Assembly: GCA_965649825.1 (NCBI GenBank)
Contig: OZ287694.1
Span: forward strand, 929,197-993,196
Direction of reading: 5' to 3'
From: Penicillus capitatus
Lineage: Eukaryota; Plantae; Chlorophyta
DNA: 64,000 nt
Shown: piece by piece, positions 3,001 to 59,854 of the stretch
Position numbering within the stretch: position 1 is the first letter of the stretch
Layout of the letters: each line of letters opens with the position of its first letter
Program-made: the position numbers and the translations under genes
The notes under the pieces: generated by a model
What the model saw: the letters and a program-made list of their open reading frames with translations, nothing else
Databases searched by the model: none
What the model was told of the DNA's origin: nothing

Positions 3001-5383
3001 ATAGTCATCCCGCCACCATAACCGGCATCATTTCGCGTTGTGGAACAGTTCTTCAGGTTGACAGTTGACTCCAGTACTGATATGCCTCCGCCGGAAAACT
3101 GTGCCGTGTTTCCAGTGAAGTGATCCTCGCTTATATTTGCCTTTCCATCTACAAGGTTCAAACCAGCACCGTATTCAGCCACATTCCTTAAGTAGTTGCA
3201 TCGGTGAGACGCGACACTGGAATTCTCTGCCATTACTGCTCCTCCTGTCCCTTGAGCGGTGTTTCCTGACCAGATGATATTTTCCAGATGTGCACTGCTT
3301 TCCTCCACGATATGGGCTCCAGCGCCATCAAGAGAAGCATTGTTACCCGAGAAAACGCATCGGCTTATTGCCAGACGTTCCGAGAATATGCAGTCGAGTC
3401 CTCCACCAGTCTTGGCGGAGTTATTGTTCACATTGCAGTTACGAAGTTCCATCTGGGGAGATGCTGAAAGGAAAATACCTCCTCCCTTGTCGAGCACAGA
3501 GTTTTCTGCGAAAGTTGTATCCACGATCTTGCTGTCCAGAACGCCATCGCAGTAAAGAGCACCTCCATTCCCTGCGCTATTCTTGGATAGAATGGATTTG
3601 CGGACAATGAGATCTCTGGATGTGAATACATATAGACAGCCACCATCTCTAGCTGTGTTGTTGTGGCATTGTACGACAGACAGCTTTGTCGAGTTGCTCG
3701 CTGTAAGAAAGATGGCTCCTCCTTTCCCTGAGGCAGTGTTGTTGTAGAAGACAGAGGAGAACAGCTTCAGCGTTCCGTTGAAGACCAGGAGGGATCCTGC
3801 ATCAACTACAGCGATGTTGTCTTGAAAATGACAACGGTCGATTGTCAGATTGCCATTAAAAGCGGCGACGGCGGCACCGGTTTCCGCAGAATTGAAAGTG
3901 AAGTTGCAGCCAGACACCGCGATAGTATTGGTGGAATTCGATAAAATCGCAGCTCCAAGGAGGCGATCGAAGTTCTTATGAAATGTGCTGTTAATGACAA
4001 TGACAGCTCGGGCTCGGTCCAGCAAGAGAGCGGATTGATTGGAGGTTCTGATGTCGGTATCCCTCATCTCCAGGCTGCCTTCGACGATATGGATGACAGA
4101 CAGTTCGTTCGAATGCGCTCTCAGACGATCGACTGAGGACGAAGATCCTGACGGGGACGACATAAGGGATGATGATGGCCTTCCTTCGGAGACGCGTCTG
4201 TTCCTCCTCAGCGTCAATCCTCTCAGATCGTTCTCCAGAGAGAGTCTGGCAAAGCACCGATCACGGCAGGTGTTGTCTGAGAAGGCGACGTCGATCATCT
4301 CCAAGGACGAGCAAGACGAACTGGAGAAGGAGAGACCACTGGCTCCGTCAAGCGAGTTTCGTCTGAACGCCACGTGATGGAGCCTGATCAATCCCGGAGA
4401 GCTGTCCGGCAAGCAGTCGCCGACCTCGACGATGGAGGCATCATCTCCGTCCAACGAGCAGCCCCGAAAGACGAGATTGGCCAGGAGTACACTTTGAGAC
4501 CTGCAGAAGACTAACGGTCAGTCACATCGCCAATCACGCATTTGCTTTTACCTGATGTGAAAGATCCCATCCTTCGGCGGACATCTGAGTCGGACCTTTC
4601 TCTCTGCCTCCGGGAATGTACCATCAGCGAGCTCGGTTGATGTGACGTAGGAACTCAGAGTGAGATTCCAAGGCACTGTGACTCTGGCAGGCACTCGTAT
4701 GTCGTCCTCGACGTCCAGAAGAACGACATCGTTCTCTCTTGTGCAGTTGACGATGGTACCAAGATCATCGGATACGCCTTCCAGTGCCGCCGAGTCCACC
4801 AACCATGTCCTCGTCTCTTCGTCCAACAGCTCTGCTATCTCTTGTCGTGTCAGCTGACACGCCACATCTGTCCACGCCAGACACAGTTGGACTATGGTTT
4901 CAGAACAGCTTCTCCCTTACCTTCGGTATCAGGGCCGCGGGATCTTCTCTGCGCCAAACCACGAGTAGGAGGGTGAGCCTAAGAACAGTCATGCTTAACA
5001 GATATGATGAGAGATAAGAAATGGTTCAGGTTTTACAACATACCTTAGCTATCTGAGAGAGTCCGGCCTCCTGTCGGTTCCACTCAGGAAAACGTTCAAT
5101 ACGATTTTCTAGAAAACGCGTAAATAATTAATGTCCATTTAACCGATGAGTGAAAACGCGATACACCAAACACAAAGGAACAAGGATCAAAACCTCGTCA
5201 AGCTGCCTGTAGTATTCTGACGCGACATTTAGTTGACTCACCTGGTGGAGTATGAGGCTGTGCGGAAGCGACACGCATCTCTTCTTCTTCGGCCAGGGCA
5301 ATGACTTGCGCGAATATGAGGAGAACGAAGCACAGAAATTTTGCTGCAGTACGTCCATGTGTTCTTCTTGCCGCAGAGCACAT
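1..5383 (-). CDS. Giant secreted/membrane protein A: signal peptide, Pmp-like right-handed beta-helix repeats, Cys-rich (GCC2/GCC3-like) region, multi-pass TM C-terminus; multi-exon, 3' end runs off the window
   Basis: ATG 5383 gives MCSAARR...KFLCFVLLIFAQVIALA (signal peptide). Exons join via ORFs 4548-4865 and 294-4454. Many GGA(I/L/V) and FxxN motifs and a CVPCSGSQCNFDPDATTCQPCPENANC Cys-rich block. Exons at 249-~155 (ISINFLQVIAAAAIINVNWTSW) and ~102-1 (DFVSGAATAGVTLSVDCLFD) match the paralog at 15.8-17 kb. Confidence 0.85.
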
Positions 5384-54271: not shown

Positions 54272-56664
54272 TTAGTATGTGTCTTCGAAATCGGCAAAGA
54301 CATAGTAGGTCTTCACATCTGTTGCATTCATGCCATTGAAATTTGAGGCTCCAGCCAATGTGTATGCCCCCATGTCAGGAAACAGCAGCCAGTCACCCGA
54401 ATACATGTCTGGCAGCATACAGTCTTTGAGAACAGTGTCCAGTCCATCGCACGTTGGACCAAAGACCGTGCTTGGATAGCAGGAGTGATGTTGCATGGCA
54501 CGGTTGATTGTGAGAGGAATGGTTTTTGGCGAACTGTGATCGTAGAGAATGCAATTGAAGGAGCCATAGAGTCCATCGGTGATCCAGTAATCTCGCAGCG
54601 GTATTCCCGATTCTGCAAAGCGCTCCCTTCGTCCGAAAATGTAGCAGGCCAGTGTCGCACAGGTCTCGGCAAAGTAGCGACCCGGTTCAGCGATGATGCG
54701 TACGCCTTCGTCGACGGGAAAATGATGATCGAGGGCTTGATTGACGACATCTTGCATCGCATGGAACTGCTGCATGTTGTCTTTCATCTTTCCAGAACAG
54801 AATCCGCCTCCGATGTCGAGGATCGAGAGATCGAAGTCGTACTGGGCACCGATATCAAACGCACGCTTCGCTAGAGCAATGGCAGCCGAAAAGGCATCCG
54901 GATTCGTTGCCCCACTTCCCACATGAAAACTCACTCCGACGACGTCGATGCCCAACATTCTCGCTTTTTGATAAAGGGTTGGCAGATCGTACATCTCGGC
55001 ACCATACTTATTGCCCAGCAAACATCTCGCCTCTGGATCATCTGCTCGGATTCTTAACAGGGCCCGTGGATGGTGCGCATTGGCTTTCAGTTTTTCCAGT
55101 TCCGAGAGCGTATCGAATGTCGTCATCTTGACACCGTATTTTTGAGCAGCACAGATATCTTGTGGATGTTTGCATGCGTTGGCAAAGAGGATCTTGGACG
55201 GAGGAATCCCCAGATCCAATACCAGTTTGATTTCGTCCTTAGAGGCGCAATCAAATCCAGCACCCAGCGATCCCAGAAACCGAATCAGAACGGGATCTGG
55301 ATTGCATTTGACAGCATAGTATGGTTCGATACGGGGAAAGAGTCGCCTCCAAGTGAGATAGAGTTCCTGCACCGTTGTCAGATTCATGATGTAGAACGTG
55401 CTGCAAAGATTATTGGAAACGATCAGATCTCTCATGTAGCTCAGCATCTCAACACTTCCCAGATTCTCAATGCCATATCTCTTTTCAAAATGCGGCATTA
55501 TTAGAGAATCGAACTTGACATCGTCGTCCAGGATGGCAGCAGGCGCATCCTCCTCCAGCGGAAATCCTTCAAAGGTCGAGTCGACATCCGACTGACCAGA
55601 AAGACAGGACGAAGGAATCATCGTATTGGGAGACTCGATTCTTTGCACGGTACTCGCCTTGAACACGACGTGACTACCGTCCGCTAGATATTGGACTGAG
55701 AGCCCATCTGAGCAGTATCCCCTCAGGGAATGCTGCAAGTCTTTGAGTAGGAGGATGTCTTTGTATGAGGAGGAATGCAAAGAGATGTGGATATCCTGTG
55801 GAGCAAAGATGCGCAGGACTTGAGCGAGTGCCATGTTTAGACAGATGTCGTTGGGTTTGAGACAGGAGAACTCCACACTGGCATAACTGCATTGCTCCTC
55901 CGGTGTCACGTGAATGGTCAAGATTCCGCTCTTGGACAAACTGTTCAGGGAATAACCACAGGGTTCGAACATGCAATCGTCGAGCAAGGCTCCGGGCAGC
56001 AATTCTGCAATGCCACTTTCGTAGGTCGTCGTTCTGGCATCGACGAATTTTTCCGTCCGGACGAACTGCTGAGCCAATCCTGGATCGAGTCCCGTGAGGC
56101 ACATCTCCACCGAGGAGGCAACAGGAGAGAATAATCCTTCCTTTTCTGTCGCATAGAAAAGATGCCACTGTAGACCACGAGACTGATTTCCCAATACATA
56201 AGAGGCGCCATTCAGATGTGCAAAGTGCTTGTTCAATTCCTGGACTTCTTCTTCGAAGTTTTGATGAGGATAATGCTGCAAAGAACAAGTGATGTGACAG
56301 CTGAAAAGGTACTGACGATACACACCTGAGCATCGGGAAAGAGAAAACTGGCACGGCTGTATTTCACTCGTCGGACGTACATTCCCAAATCGACGGTCCA
56401 CTCGAGTAATCGTCCCAGTCCATTCAAGATTTGTGTGCGGCCGCATGTCTTGAGGATAAATGTACTGTGGCGAACGAACAAACTGCTTTCGGAGAGTACA
56501 TAGGCATCAACATCTGATGTGTGACGTGCTGAGATGATGTTACAGCGCGTCAGGTGCATCAGCTGATCCAATTGATCTCGTGATATCTGTCGCAAACCGA
56601 TCGACGACGTGCGGCAAAAACCAAACTCGATCTCAATACGTTTCTCAGATCCTTCGAAAGACAT
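54272..56664 (-). CDS. SAMDC/ODC: Bifunctional S-adenosylmethionine decarboxylase - ornithine decarboxylase fusion (~780 aa)
   Basis: Exons 56664-56326 and 56275-54272 (50-nt intron). AdoMetDC motifs: FEGSEKRIEI, YVLSESSLFV, LKTCG, FEPCGYSLN, TIHVTPE. ODC motifs in the same frame: YAVKCN, HVGSG, DIGGGF, EPGRYF, FGPTCDG, MGAYT. Confidence 0.95.
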
Positions 56665-56697
56665 GGCGACTGCTTTGTAAGAAAAAACAGTAAACGA

Positions 56698-56946
56698 TTA
56701 GTGCAGAGACAGAGACACAAGGTGGCGGCGGCTGGATCGTGGCCTGTCAGGAGGGTCTCTTGGCACACTAAACATAGAAATGCATTTGCCGTCATCAAAG
56801 GAGACAGTTTTGCGAACATCGGAGCAGCAGGGGCTAAACTTAGGGATACCACCCCACGGGCGAATTTCGCAGAAGTCCAGTGAGTCTTCCTTGCAAGCGT
56901 CGACCAACAAACAATGACTACTTGAGTCGTTTTCACCAGAGTCCAT
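56698..56946 (-). promoter_or_regulatory. Conserved-peptide uORF homologous to the land-plant AdoMetDC small uORF
   Basis: MDSGENDSSSHCLL...CEIRPWGGIPKF versus the plant consensus MESKGGKKKSSSSSSL...EDVRPNGGIKKF. Ends 33 nt before the main ATG. Confidence 0.75.
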
Positions 56947-57039
56947 GAGCGAGAGAACGAAGAGAGGCGACTTCCGCCAGCGTTGAATGCAGAAATGCGA
57001 TGAAATGGATCTTTGACGGCGAAGAAGAACGAGATGATT

Positions 57040-57069
57040 TTAATGCTGATCTGGATACCACTCTATCAT
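57040..57069 (-). promoter_or_regulatory. Candidate tiny uORF (MIEWYPDQH*) in the SAMDC-ODC leader
   Basis: ATG ATA GAG TGG TAT CCA GAT CAG CAT TAA, directly after a ttag/g acceptor-like site. Function not supported beyond position. Confidence 0.3.
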
Positions 57070-57407
57070 CCTAAGACACATAGTATACACGTCTGCAGGC
57101 ATGTGACCAACACAGAAGGCACCCAACACCTGCTAAACATACCAATGATACCTGCGTATGCGTTTACGGCATCCACTGCGCGCGCCTTCCTTAGATTTGA
57201 GCCTTGGATGGTGTCGCTGACCTGGGCTGTAGAATGATGTGACGTTTGTCGTTGCTGTATCTGGCATCGATCGCACCAGAGCCGAGATCGGATATTCATT
57301 CTGAGACTGGTCGTTGAGAAAAACTTACAAACATTCTATCAAACGTAGATACTATGCATACAAGCACAGAAACATGACGTTGATCGAATATTGTCGTCTG
57401 GCGGGGC

Positions 57408-59854
57408 TCAGGATATGGGACTTGTGCTCTCCTTGAGCCATGCCTGTGCTTCGGGGGAGAGCCTGTTCGACACCGTCTCCCAGATTCGTTGGTGATATTC
57501 GTTGATCCACGTTTTCTCCTGTACGGATAGATCTTCTATCCTCATGAGTTTCTTTTGAATCGGAACGAGAGAGATCGTCTCGAATCCTAAAAACGACATG
57601 CCCTCAAACTTGAGCGGCGTTTCTTTCTCCTTGATAATGCAGAGATTCTCAATCCGAATGCCGAAATTCCCCTTTTCATAGTAACCAGGTTCATTGCTGA
57701 CCACCATGTTCGCTTTCAGTGGCTCCTGTGCCATCAGAGCCGAAGCTCTGAAAGTGATCGCAATGGGACCTGCATCCACACCGTCTCGGTGCAACAAGGC
57801 GAGAGAGGGGCACTGCACCTTCATGAACACACATATGTGCTCCGACTCCGTGTCCCGTCCCATGCATGTACTCCAATCCCATAGCCCAAAGGGGACGACG
57901 CGCAAAAGCGTCAATGGCAATACCTGCCGTGTCTTTTGGAAAGACAGCTGTCGCCATCGCAACATGTCCTTGGAGAACGCGTGTGAAGCACGTCTTCTGA
58001 TGATCGGACGGTGTGCCCAGATGAAAGGTCCTCGTAAGATCTGTTGTCCCACAGTCATACTGCCCGCCCGAATCGATCAAGACCATCGAATTCCCATCCA
58101 CCGTGCTACAGGAGTCTGGCATTGCATGATAGTGAATAATAGCTCCGTTCGCATTCGCCCCTTAAGTCAGAACACACTGTTTATGGAAGGACCCTTCTGG
58201 AGGCGAGAATCTGTCAGACCAGCAATAGTCGGGAAGCTCACTCCCTTGAAGCCTTTCTGCTTTGCGCGTCGCGCGGTGATCTCTATATCCACATCCACCT
58301 CTGTCAACGTGCGCCCCGAAGCAATCTCCTCGTCCAACCAACTCAAGAACTCGATGACGGCAGTGGCATCACGGATGTGCGCCTCGCGCATACCATTCAG
58401 CTCTAGTGGATTCTTGATAGACATAAATGATGTCAGAGGCGTCTTGTCGCGCACAATCAGTTTGTCGCTCTGTCGCCAATATCTGTTGACATCAGGATTA
58501 GGCGCATGACAGCATACCTCTTCCCCTAGAGCCTCCCTTGCCGCCACGAATATGGCTTCGTTAACAAGTTTAGCATCGAGCCACACTTTTGATGTGTTGT
58601 TTTCACTCAGACGTCGTTTCAATCCCTCGGTGGCCTCTTCGTATGGCTTCACAGTGATGTTTACCGCTTTCAGGTAGGCCTCAACCTCTTCTGTGATTTT
58701 GGCAGGGTCTACGTAGAGATCCGCCGAATCGGGTGTGATCATGAGATAGGAAATGAAAACGGGCGAACTGTCCTCGTCTGCCCCTCTCAGATTCAGCGTC
58801 CAGGCAATTTCGTCCAGTTTCGACACCAGGAGCGTAGATGCCTCGAAATCTGACATCGCTTTTCGAATCCTCTTCAATTTGGAATCGATACTCTCCCCTG
58901 CAAACAGCACAGTATACGGCCTGGCTTCTTATCTACTGAACAGAACTTACCGGCAATCTCCATGGGGTGAATGACGATAGGCTTCGAAGGGATTTCCGGG
59001 ATATCCTCTCCCCAGACGCGGTCAACCAAATTCTCATTTAACTGAACCACCTCCAGTTGCTGGAATAAAAAGTCTGTCGTGTTCGCGACTGCTGTGCAAA
59101 GGGTATGGGGACCTTCAGTTTCTTAGACAGTGTTTCAACTTCGTTGTTTGAGTGCAGGAATGGATCAATTCCAATACGGGAGCCTGCCTTCAGTGTCATC
59201 AACAGCCATTTGGAAATCTACACATACAGTCAGTCCACCCCATTTCGCCCGGGACAGGAGACAACAGAGGGACATACGTCGGGACATTCTGGTAGACCCA
59301 TCTTCATTAGTATCCAATCTGCAGACAGTTGTTGCTCTGCTTGCAAGAAATAACGACCGTCTGTCCACAAAGCGGCAGCCTCTGCTGTGATTACTGCTGT
59401 CCCTACGGCAGACGGATGCATCATGATGCGGTGTTCTGCGTGAATCGTCTGACCAGCACTGCCGGTGAATCCGGAGATGAAGGCACGTCTTTCGAAACGG
59501 ACAGGTAAAAACTCCATGAGATGCGGATCCGCCGATGGAACGATGTAAGCCGAAACACCGGCCCCCTTCATGATCGATCGCAGTTCCTCGAGTTTTTTGG
59601 CTGCTATGGTTTCTTCTTGTCCCATCTCTGCTGTCTCTGTGCTCGCCGAGTACACGGTAAACGCTCGAGAACGTGACTGCGGATGCAGTGCCTAAGCGCA
59701 GTACCGTCATCCTCGGCAAAACCGAGCTAGAGAGTACGACAAAAGAACGCCTTTGCGTGCGAAGAGAACAAACGTGTTGTCTTTTCAGCAAATGTGCCGT
59801 AGAGAATGCGATGCGCGTGCAAGGACTGGGTCTCAGCGTGCTGAGAAACGACAT
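57408..59854 (-). CDS. Xaa-Pro aminopeptidase P (M24B), organellar presequence, multi-exon
   Basis: AYIVPSADPH..EF...RRAFISGFTGSAG, AALWTDGRYFLQA, LDEIAWTLNLRG, LIDSGGQYDCGTTDLTRT, HGTGHGVG...HEG, SNEPGYYEKGNFGIRIEN. Confidence 0.93.

Follow-up and report, generated by a model that had tools for sequence, protein, structure and literature searches.

The bifunctional AdoMetDC–ODC gene described here probably carries in its 5' leader the small upstream ORF (uORF) of green-lineage AdoMetDC genes, split by an intron and presumably acting through a ribosome arrest like that of Arabidopsis. The gene is read from the minus strand of the window, by which we mean the whole 64,000-nt stretch of Penicillus capitatus DNA that was analyzed. 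Membership of the uORF in the AdoMetDC small uORF family (CPuORF homology group 3, PF08132) is well supported by sequence comparison, since its position, length, core motif, C-terminus, common intron position and profile scores together point to that family. The suggestion of an earlier note on this DNA, that the leader holds a plant-type AdoMetDC small uORF, is borne out by the same features.

Once a single 50-nt intron is removed, the main ORF reads without interruption as a fusion protein of 780 aa. The gene and its upstream neighbor comprise the following features:
54272..56275, minus strand: main ORF exon 2, with the remaining AdoMetDC sequence, the linker, the ODC domains and the stop codon
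56276..56325, minus strand: main ORF intron, 50 nt, GTGTGT...TTTGCAG with GT..AG ends, whose removal gives a single 780-aa ORF with full-length Pfam matches
56326..56664, minus strand: main ORF exon 1, with the ATG at 56664, the AdoMetDC N-terminus and the self-processing site YVLSESS
57408..59625, minus strand: Xaa-Pro aminopeptidase, the upstream neighbor, 614 aa with full-length Creatinase_N/Peptidase_M24 domains (Pfam)

A Pfam scan of the 780-aa protein returns a full-length eukaryotic AdoMetDC domain (SAM_decarbox, residues 2-318, E=3.7e-87) with both ODC domains C-terminal to it, and the ODC lysine motif YAVKCN and the motif GPTCDGLD are readable in the translation. The protein begins with MSFEGSEKR, the conserved AdoMetDC start. 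Its closest named relatives are those of Caulerpa lentillifera (53%), Bryopsis (47%) and Ostreobium (46%), as befits a Bryopsidales-like green alga, and the fusion is widespread in Viridiplantae, occurring in many chlorophytes, Chlorokybus, Mesostigma, Mesotaenium, liverworts and ferns. A fusion of AdoMetDC and ODC in Micromonas was reportedly described by Green et al. in 2011. The bifunctional AdoMetDC/ODC of Plasmodium, which belongs to another lineage, has the same domain order in one polypeptide, and we know of no PF08132-type uORF associated with it.

Two syntenic loci were compared with the window, one from an ENA metagenome (L001) and one from a Logan assembly (L002). Both show the gene order Xaa-Pro aminopeptidase, this fusion gene, TMEM192 and DSPc, with main-protein identities to the window of 91% for L001 and 62% for L002. 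The main-ORF intron (56325..56276, after codon 113) is missing in L002 (4001..6385), and Bryopsis (L005, ~3406..3774) has an intron at about the same codon as the window. The genome is compact, its introns tiny and its splice signals weak. The aminopeptidase gene alone has seven introns of 48-60 nt, whose donors (GTCAGA, GTATGT, GTCCCC, GTAAGT, GTATGC, GTCTGA and GTGCAG) share little beyond the GT. A TGTAA of this upstream gene lies at 57329..57325; UGUAA is the polyadenylation signal of chlorophytes. Only 90 nt separate the aminopeptidase stop from the uORF ATG in L002 (3657..3747), with no TGTAA between them. Overlapping aminopeptidase and fusion transcripts, or a very short leader, may be the consequence there. 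Scanning the entire window for Rfam families and tRNAs gave no matches.

Upstream of the fusion ORF, on the same strand, an ATG-to-stop ORF of 82 codons (56946..56698) encodes the motif EIRPWGGIPKF and a short DSSS run. The earlier note had taken this frame as the uORF; the frame is present, and its length and its stop at 56698 arise from reading through an intron of 50 nt. Removal of that intron leaves a mature uORF of 49 codons (56946..56818 joined to 56767..56747), and the leader is then made up as follows:
Window ~56970..56985, minus strand (L001 ~3370..3385; L002 ~3709..3723): CTGGCG(G)AA..CGCC block
56818..56946, minus strand: uORF exon 1, ATG 56946..56944, 43 codons, MDSGENDSSSHCLLVDACKEDSLDFCEIRPWGGIPKFSPCCSD, the core of which aligns with land-plant leader peptides
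56768..56817, minus strand: uORF intron, 50 nt, GTTCGC...TGTTTAG with GT..AG ends, whose removal restores CAKRPS-stop
56747..56767, minus strand: uORF exon 2, TGT GCC AAG AGA CCC TCC TGA, encoding CAKRPS-stop, with the stop codon at 56749..56747
56665..56746, minus strand: spacer of 82 nt from the uORF stop to the main ATG, free of ATG, its first ~23 nt invariant relative to L001

The spliced peptide thus ends in SPCCSD/CAKRPS-stop, where the slash marks the junction, and the intron lies six codons before the stop. Splicing drops four stray ATGs (56819, 56795, 56785 and 56775) and leaves exactly two AUGs in the leader, the uORF start and the main start. Position -3 is C and position +4 is G around the former, and the latter has G at -3. 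The window contains no tiny uORF overlapping the uORF ATG (the sequence reads ctcATGg, with no overlapping ATG upstream), which agrees with what had been noted before. The end of the uORF, CC(N)TCC TGA C (within 56716..56752 of the window), is common to the window, L001, Bryopsis and the contigs L003, L004 and L009; in Marchantia and L002 the base after the stop is T, giving TGA T. UGA-C is a poor termination context and would suit stalling at a stop codon. Farther upstream, 25-40 nt before the uORF ATG, the CTGGCG(G)AA..CGCC block is kept in all three syntenic loci within an otherwise diverged leader; it is nearly palindromic and could be a promoter or transcription start element or a small hairpin.

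Homology to the land-plant small uORF is seen in the spliced peptide. Pfam PF08132 (AdoMetDC_leader) matches its residues 8-49 at profile positions 11-51 of 51 (E=0.0018) with 18.5 bits, below the curated gathering cut-off of 25 bits; the divergent N-terminus lowers the score. The unspliced 82-aa form gave no match in the Pfam scan even at E<=10. A land-plant-only HMM was built from 11 land-plant-type leader peptides, all ending in AAYSNC(V/C)RKPS. Against it the spliced peptide scores 14.8 bits, a value reached by none of 2000 shuffles (best shuffle 8.1), and the unspliced form scores 8.8. Peptides of the Bryopsis type score 22-26 bits against the land-plant profile and bridge the window and land-plant groups. 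A profile of algal and liverwort peptides in turn finds entries of Musa, Amborella, Ensete and others that bear the name "S-adenosyl-l-methionine decarboxylase leader peptide".

Individual features tell the same story of likeness to the land-plant small uORF, for example that of Arabidopsis AdoMetDC1/SAMDC1. Both lie in an AdoMetDC 5' leader (here a predicted one, with the uORF at 56946..56747 and the main ATG at 56664 on the same strand), and both share the core, the K/R-P-S end and the intron six codons before the stop. The core EIRPWGGIPKF aligns with DvRPhGGvekF and fits (E/D)(V/I)RPxGG(I/V)xKF. The C-terminal pattern C-x-(K/R)-(K/R)-P-S-stop, with its penultimate proline, is found in the spliced form only (CAKRPS; CVRKPS in land plants). 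Plant AdoMetDC small uORFs are given as 48-55 codons in the available text of PMC2811004; the 49 codons of the spliced form fall in this range and the 82 of the unspliced form do not. The N-terminus had been described as keeping the Ser-run of land plants along with the RPxGGIxKF core; the core and a short DSSS run are indeed there, but the N-terminal half has diverged, being acidic and Cys-rich where the land-plant peptide is of the KGGKKKSSSS type. The window further differs from land plants in having no overlapping tiny uORF and in its main ORF, which is an AdoMetDC–ODC fusion and not AdoMetDC alone as in the land-plant reference system.

The comparison with the syntenic loci bears on both the peptide and the intron. 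Relative to L001, identity is 96.9% in exon 1, 100% in exon 2, 84% in the spacer and 69% in the upstream leader; of all the sequence aligned beyond the uORF ATG, the intron is the least conserved, at 70.6% with one indel. The ratio of synonymous to non-synonymous uORF changes is 3:1 against L001 and 11:3 against L002 (last 26 codons), and because most codon changes are synonymous, selection acts on the peptide. Its N-terminal half is poorly conserved. In unspliced form the N-terminus and core are kept in L001 and L002 and the tail differs: the L001 frame meets a stop within the intron at 59 codons, and in L002 one reads a different, in-frame 66-codon ORF ending in CAKRPS-stop. Introns lie at the same codon in all three, namely GTTCGC...TGTTTAG (50 nt) in the window, GTACAC...GTCTAG (51 nt) in L001 and GTAAGT...TTTGCAG (45 nt) in L002, the last directly following CCCD. 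The window intron shifts the frame, that of L001 carries an in-frame stop and that of L002 stays in frame, and only the spliced product is conserved, with the identical ending SPCC(S/C)D/CAKRPS-stop in 3/3 loci. The conservation of the peptide among relatives, on which the earlier proposal depended, is thus seen in both exons and in the CAKRPS ending of L001 and L002.

An intron at this codon is also found beyond these three loci. The Bryopsis genome has a 293-nt intron, GTAAGT..TTTTGCAG, within YSD/RQKRPS-stop, and the cDNA-like Logan contig L003, from a Bryopsis relative, lacks exactly that intron and reads YSD RHKRPS-stop. The fused gene of Marchantia has an intron at the same codon (AAYSN/CVRKPS-stop), and in many land-plant genomic calls AAYSN runs on into VS, a read-through into a GT intron, where spliced entries end in AAYSNCVRKPS. 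The window and its two syntenic loci thus share this position with Bryopsis, Marchantia and the unspliced land-plant calls. Arabidopsis SAMDC genes have introns only in the uORFs (PMC5745906).

GTTCGC, the donor of the uORF intron, departs strongly from the textbook consensus. Its loose form and the size of the intron are typical of the eight other introns in the window, and a 50-nt intron with such a donor is normal in this genome, given the 48-60 nt introns and loose donors of the aminopeptidase gene. A splice-site PWM built from the nine window introns discriminates poorly, as 21% of exonic GT..AG pairs reach the score of the weakest true intron, and so it cannot alone prove the uORF intron. 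Scans of metagenome contigs for transcripts of the clade gave no matches, either to a 38-mer of exon 1 or to a degenerate spliced-junction pattern. Among 5.8 billion proteins searched by profile, the window's clade was represented only by the unspliced 59-aa call of L001 (P0121), and no spliced peptide derived from cDNA turned up for it. From the comparative evidence we strongly infer that 56817..56768 is spliced in this species.

The uORF intron could itself be a switch. Its regulated retention would yield an 82-codon form without the KRPS arrest end and with four additional AUGs, and would so change the output of the main ORF. In the window retention does shift the frame and add the ATGs at 56819, 56795, 56785 and 56775, and the intron position, kept across Viridiplantae, could hint at a function. 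The intron sequence nevertheless evolves fast, and the outcome of retention varies from an 82-codon frameshift in the window through a stop after 59 codons in L001 to an in-frame 66-codon product in L002 that still ends in KRPS. With consequences that differ among the three species, nothing points to a conserved retention switch, and we consider regulated retention very unlikely to be a switch.

Two further features lie in or near the leader:
56670..56718, minus strand: 49-nt candidate intron of the earlier note, in the spacer downstream of the true uORF stop; unsupported
57040..57069, minus strand: 9-codon ORF, MIEWYPDQH-stop, an ATG-to-stop reading that is not conserved

The former belongs to a reading in which the unspliced 82-codon form is the functional uORF and alternative splicing from 56718 or 56768 to 56670 makes it overlap the main ORF or fuse with it. 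We hold this to be very improbable. The 82-codon ORF exists, and the segment 56718..56670 has GT..AG ends, a branch-like CTAAT, a T-run and a typical length, with CTGAC, the T-run and GCAG retained in this region of L001. The 39-residue tail of the 82-codon form, however, is not conserved (L001 stops at 59 codons and the L002 sequence is different), and only the form spliced at 56817..56768 yields the conserved CAKRPS-stop and an end-to-end Pfam match. As an intron, 56718..56670 has a PWM score of -0.3, which 42% of exonic GT..AG pairs equal or exceed, so that it scores like random exonic pairs; L001 has GC in place of the GT, and no counterpart exists in L002. Splicing from 56718 had been expected to remove the uORF stop, which it could not do, since the real stop (56749..56747) lies upstream of that donor. 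The context of branchpoint, pyrimidines and CAG before an acceptor at 56670, in which the uORF stop had been placed, accordingly does not surround the true stop, and it too is without a counterpart in L002. Were 56718..56670 a second leader intron, the spacer would merely shorten from 82 to 33 nt. The in-frame fusion predicted from "GT 56768" fails because the site straddles the true acceptor, its G being the last base of the AG of the true intron and its T the first base of exon 2.

The 9-codon ORF upstream, reported in the earlier note as a separate uORF, is present at 57069..57040, but in L001 both the ATG and the frame are different ones, and L002 lacks such an ORF altogether. It is probably not functional, either by itself or as a substitute for the tiny uORF, and it may not even be transcribed.

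Least probable of all, and hardly to be credited, is that the uORF exon is a 5' coding exon which splicing adds to the N-terminus of the enzyme, after the pattern of two Chlorokybus models (P0045 and P0094) that fuse a PF08132 segment with the enzyme: all lineages examined keep the K/R-P-S-stop ending, in the cDNA-like contigs L003, L004, L009 and L010 the uORF stands apart and ends at a stop of its own 100-310 nt ahead of the main AUG, the main ORF starts with the conserved MSFEGSEKR, and the Chlorokybus models match the leader profile at positions 1-48 and 1-44 of 51, ending at the intron site, which looks like an artefact of gene prediction.

We return to the intron-split small uORF of 49 codons and to how it would work. 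High polyamines cause the nascent peptide of the Arabidopsis AdoMetDC1 small uORF to hold the ribosome at the uORF stop, the main AUG becomes inaccessible and nonsense-mediated decay follows, as summarized in PMC5587730 (citing Uchiyama-Kadokura 2014); the mechanism of the AdoMetDC small uORF is also described in section 4 of PMC2811004. By analogy, the leader of the Penicillus gene would be transcribed and spliced, and at high polyamine levels the nascent peptide, through its RPxGG..KF core and K/R-P-S end, would arrest ribosomes at the uORF stop. Arrested ribosomes would block scanning to the main AUG, and decay of the mRNA may be triggered. At low polyamine levels ribosomes would reach the main AUG by leaky scanning past the uORF AUG with its C at -3, a route we propose because there is no tiny uORF. 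The sensing step may also differ from that of land plants, since the tiny uORF that they use for polyamine sensing is absent. As one ORF encodes both enzymes, both decarboxylase activities would be repressed together. The earlier note had likewise envisaged control over ODC; the fusion on which that idea depends is plainly there, and joint gating would follow from it.

Mammalian AdoMetDC has a comparable device in its MAGDIS uORF, a polyamine-responsive peptide that arrests at termination upstream of AdoMetDC, according to the available text of PMC2811004. The MAGDIS uORF is of six codons, cap-proximal and unrelated in sequence to the uORF of the window, and is therefore analogous and not homologous.

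The coupling of this uORF to a fused enzyme had been presented as a plant element that "now" governs a new arrangement, a view which the wider comparison does not uphold. Chlorokybus, Marchantia, Riccia, Bryopsis with two related cDNA-like contigs, an MMETSP alga and Nannochloris all have a uORF of this type ahead of the fused enzyme. Judging from these sequences, the pairing is old and not new to this alga. In Riccia the locus tags of uORF and enzyme are neighbors (P0122 next to P0070). The fused gene of Marchantia has, in addition to a small uORF with its intron at the same codon as in the window, the classic tiny uORF overlapping the small-uORF ATG by one base (ATGTTATAATGG); the tiny uORF, ATG TTA TAA, lies at L006 2428..2439. 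Fusion and complete dual-uORF circuit thus occur together in a land plant, and the likeness of the liverworts to the window is a fused enzyme behind a small uORF, with the tiny uORF of Marchantia as the difference. In Chlorokybus, the models P0045 and P0094 join the PF08132 leader to the AdoMetDC–ODC ORF, with the match ending where the uORF intron falls (AAYAD); this merger probably reflects a wrong prediction in which the uORF stop was passed over. An intronless uORF of the same type (…DVADLRPWGAVKY…CARSPS-stop) also precedes a stand-alone AdoMetDC of 402 aa on an ENA metagenome contig (L008, 944..2426), and the uORF is thus not tied to the fusion.

AdoMetDC uORFs have been reported in green algae before, with their penultimate proline noted, and the tiny uORF is absent in Chlorella and prasinophytes (Ivanov, Atkins & Michael 2010, PMC2811004, available text); the tiny uORF is therefore not required for the algal branch. 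These uORFs resemble that of the window in belonging to the same lineage and in comprising a small uORF without a tiny one. The available text of the same paper does not mention an ODC fusion of the downstream ORF, and a literature search of limited coverage found no published description of a green-algal AdoMetDC–ODC fusion together with the uORF. Because the pairing is seen in Chlorokybus, liverworts and several chlorophyte classes, a uORF gating a single AdoMetDC–ODC polypeptide could be ancestral in Viridiplantae, and the long-kept intron could be more than a relic, its retention coupling splicing to polyamine feedback; we offer this combined view as an improbable speculation. If the arrangement is ancestral, one arrest peptide would once have controlled both committed steps of spermidine synthesis.

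For the annotation of this gene, the uORF is corrected to 49 codons with an intron, in place of 82 codons, and has no splice switch at the sites proposed earlier. The case is also a warning that conserved-peptide uORFs in intron-rich algae with loose splice sites are misread from genomic DNA, as the diagnostic C-terminus appears only after splicing. An arrest uORF ahead of the fused enzyme in green algae and early land plants means that one translational sensor would throttle both decarboxylases. This provides a testable idea, perhaps familiar to specialists, of how polyamine feedback may have been organized before seed plants separated AdoMetDC and ODC.
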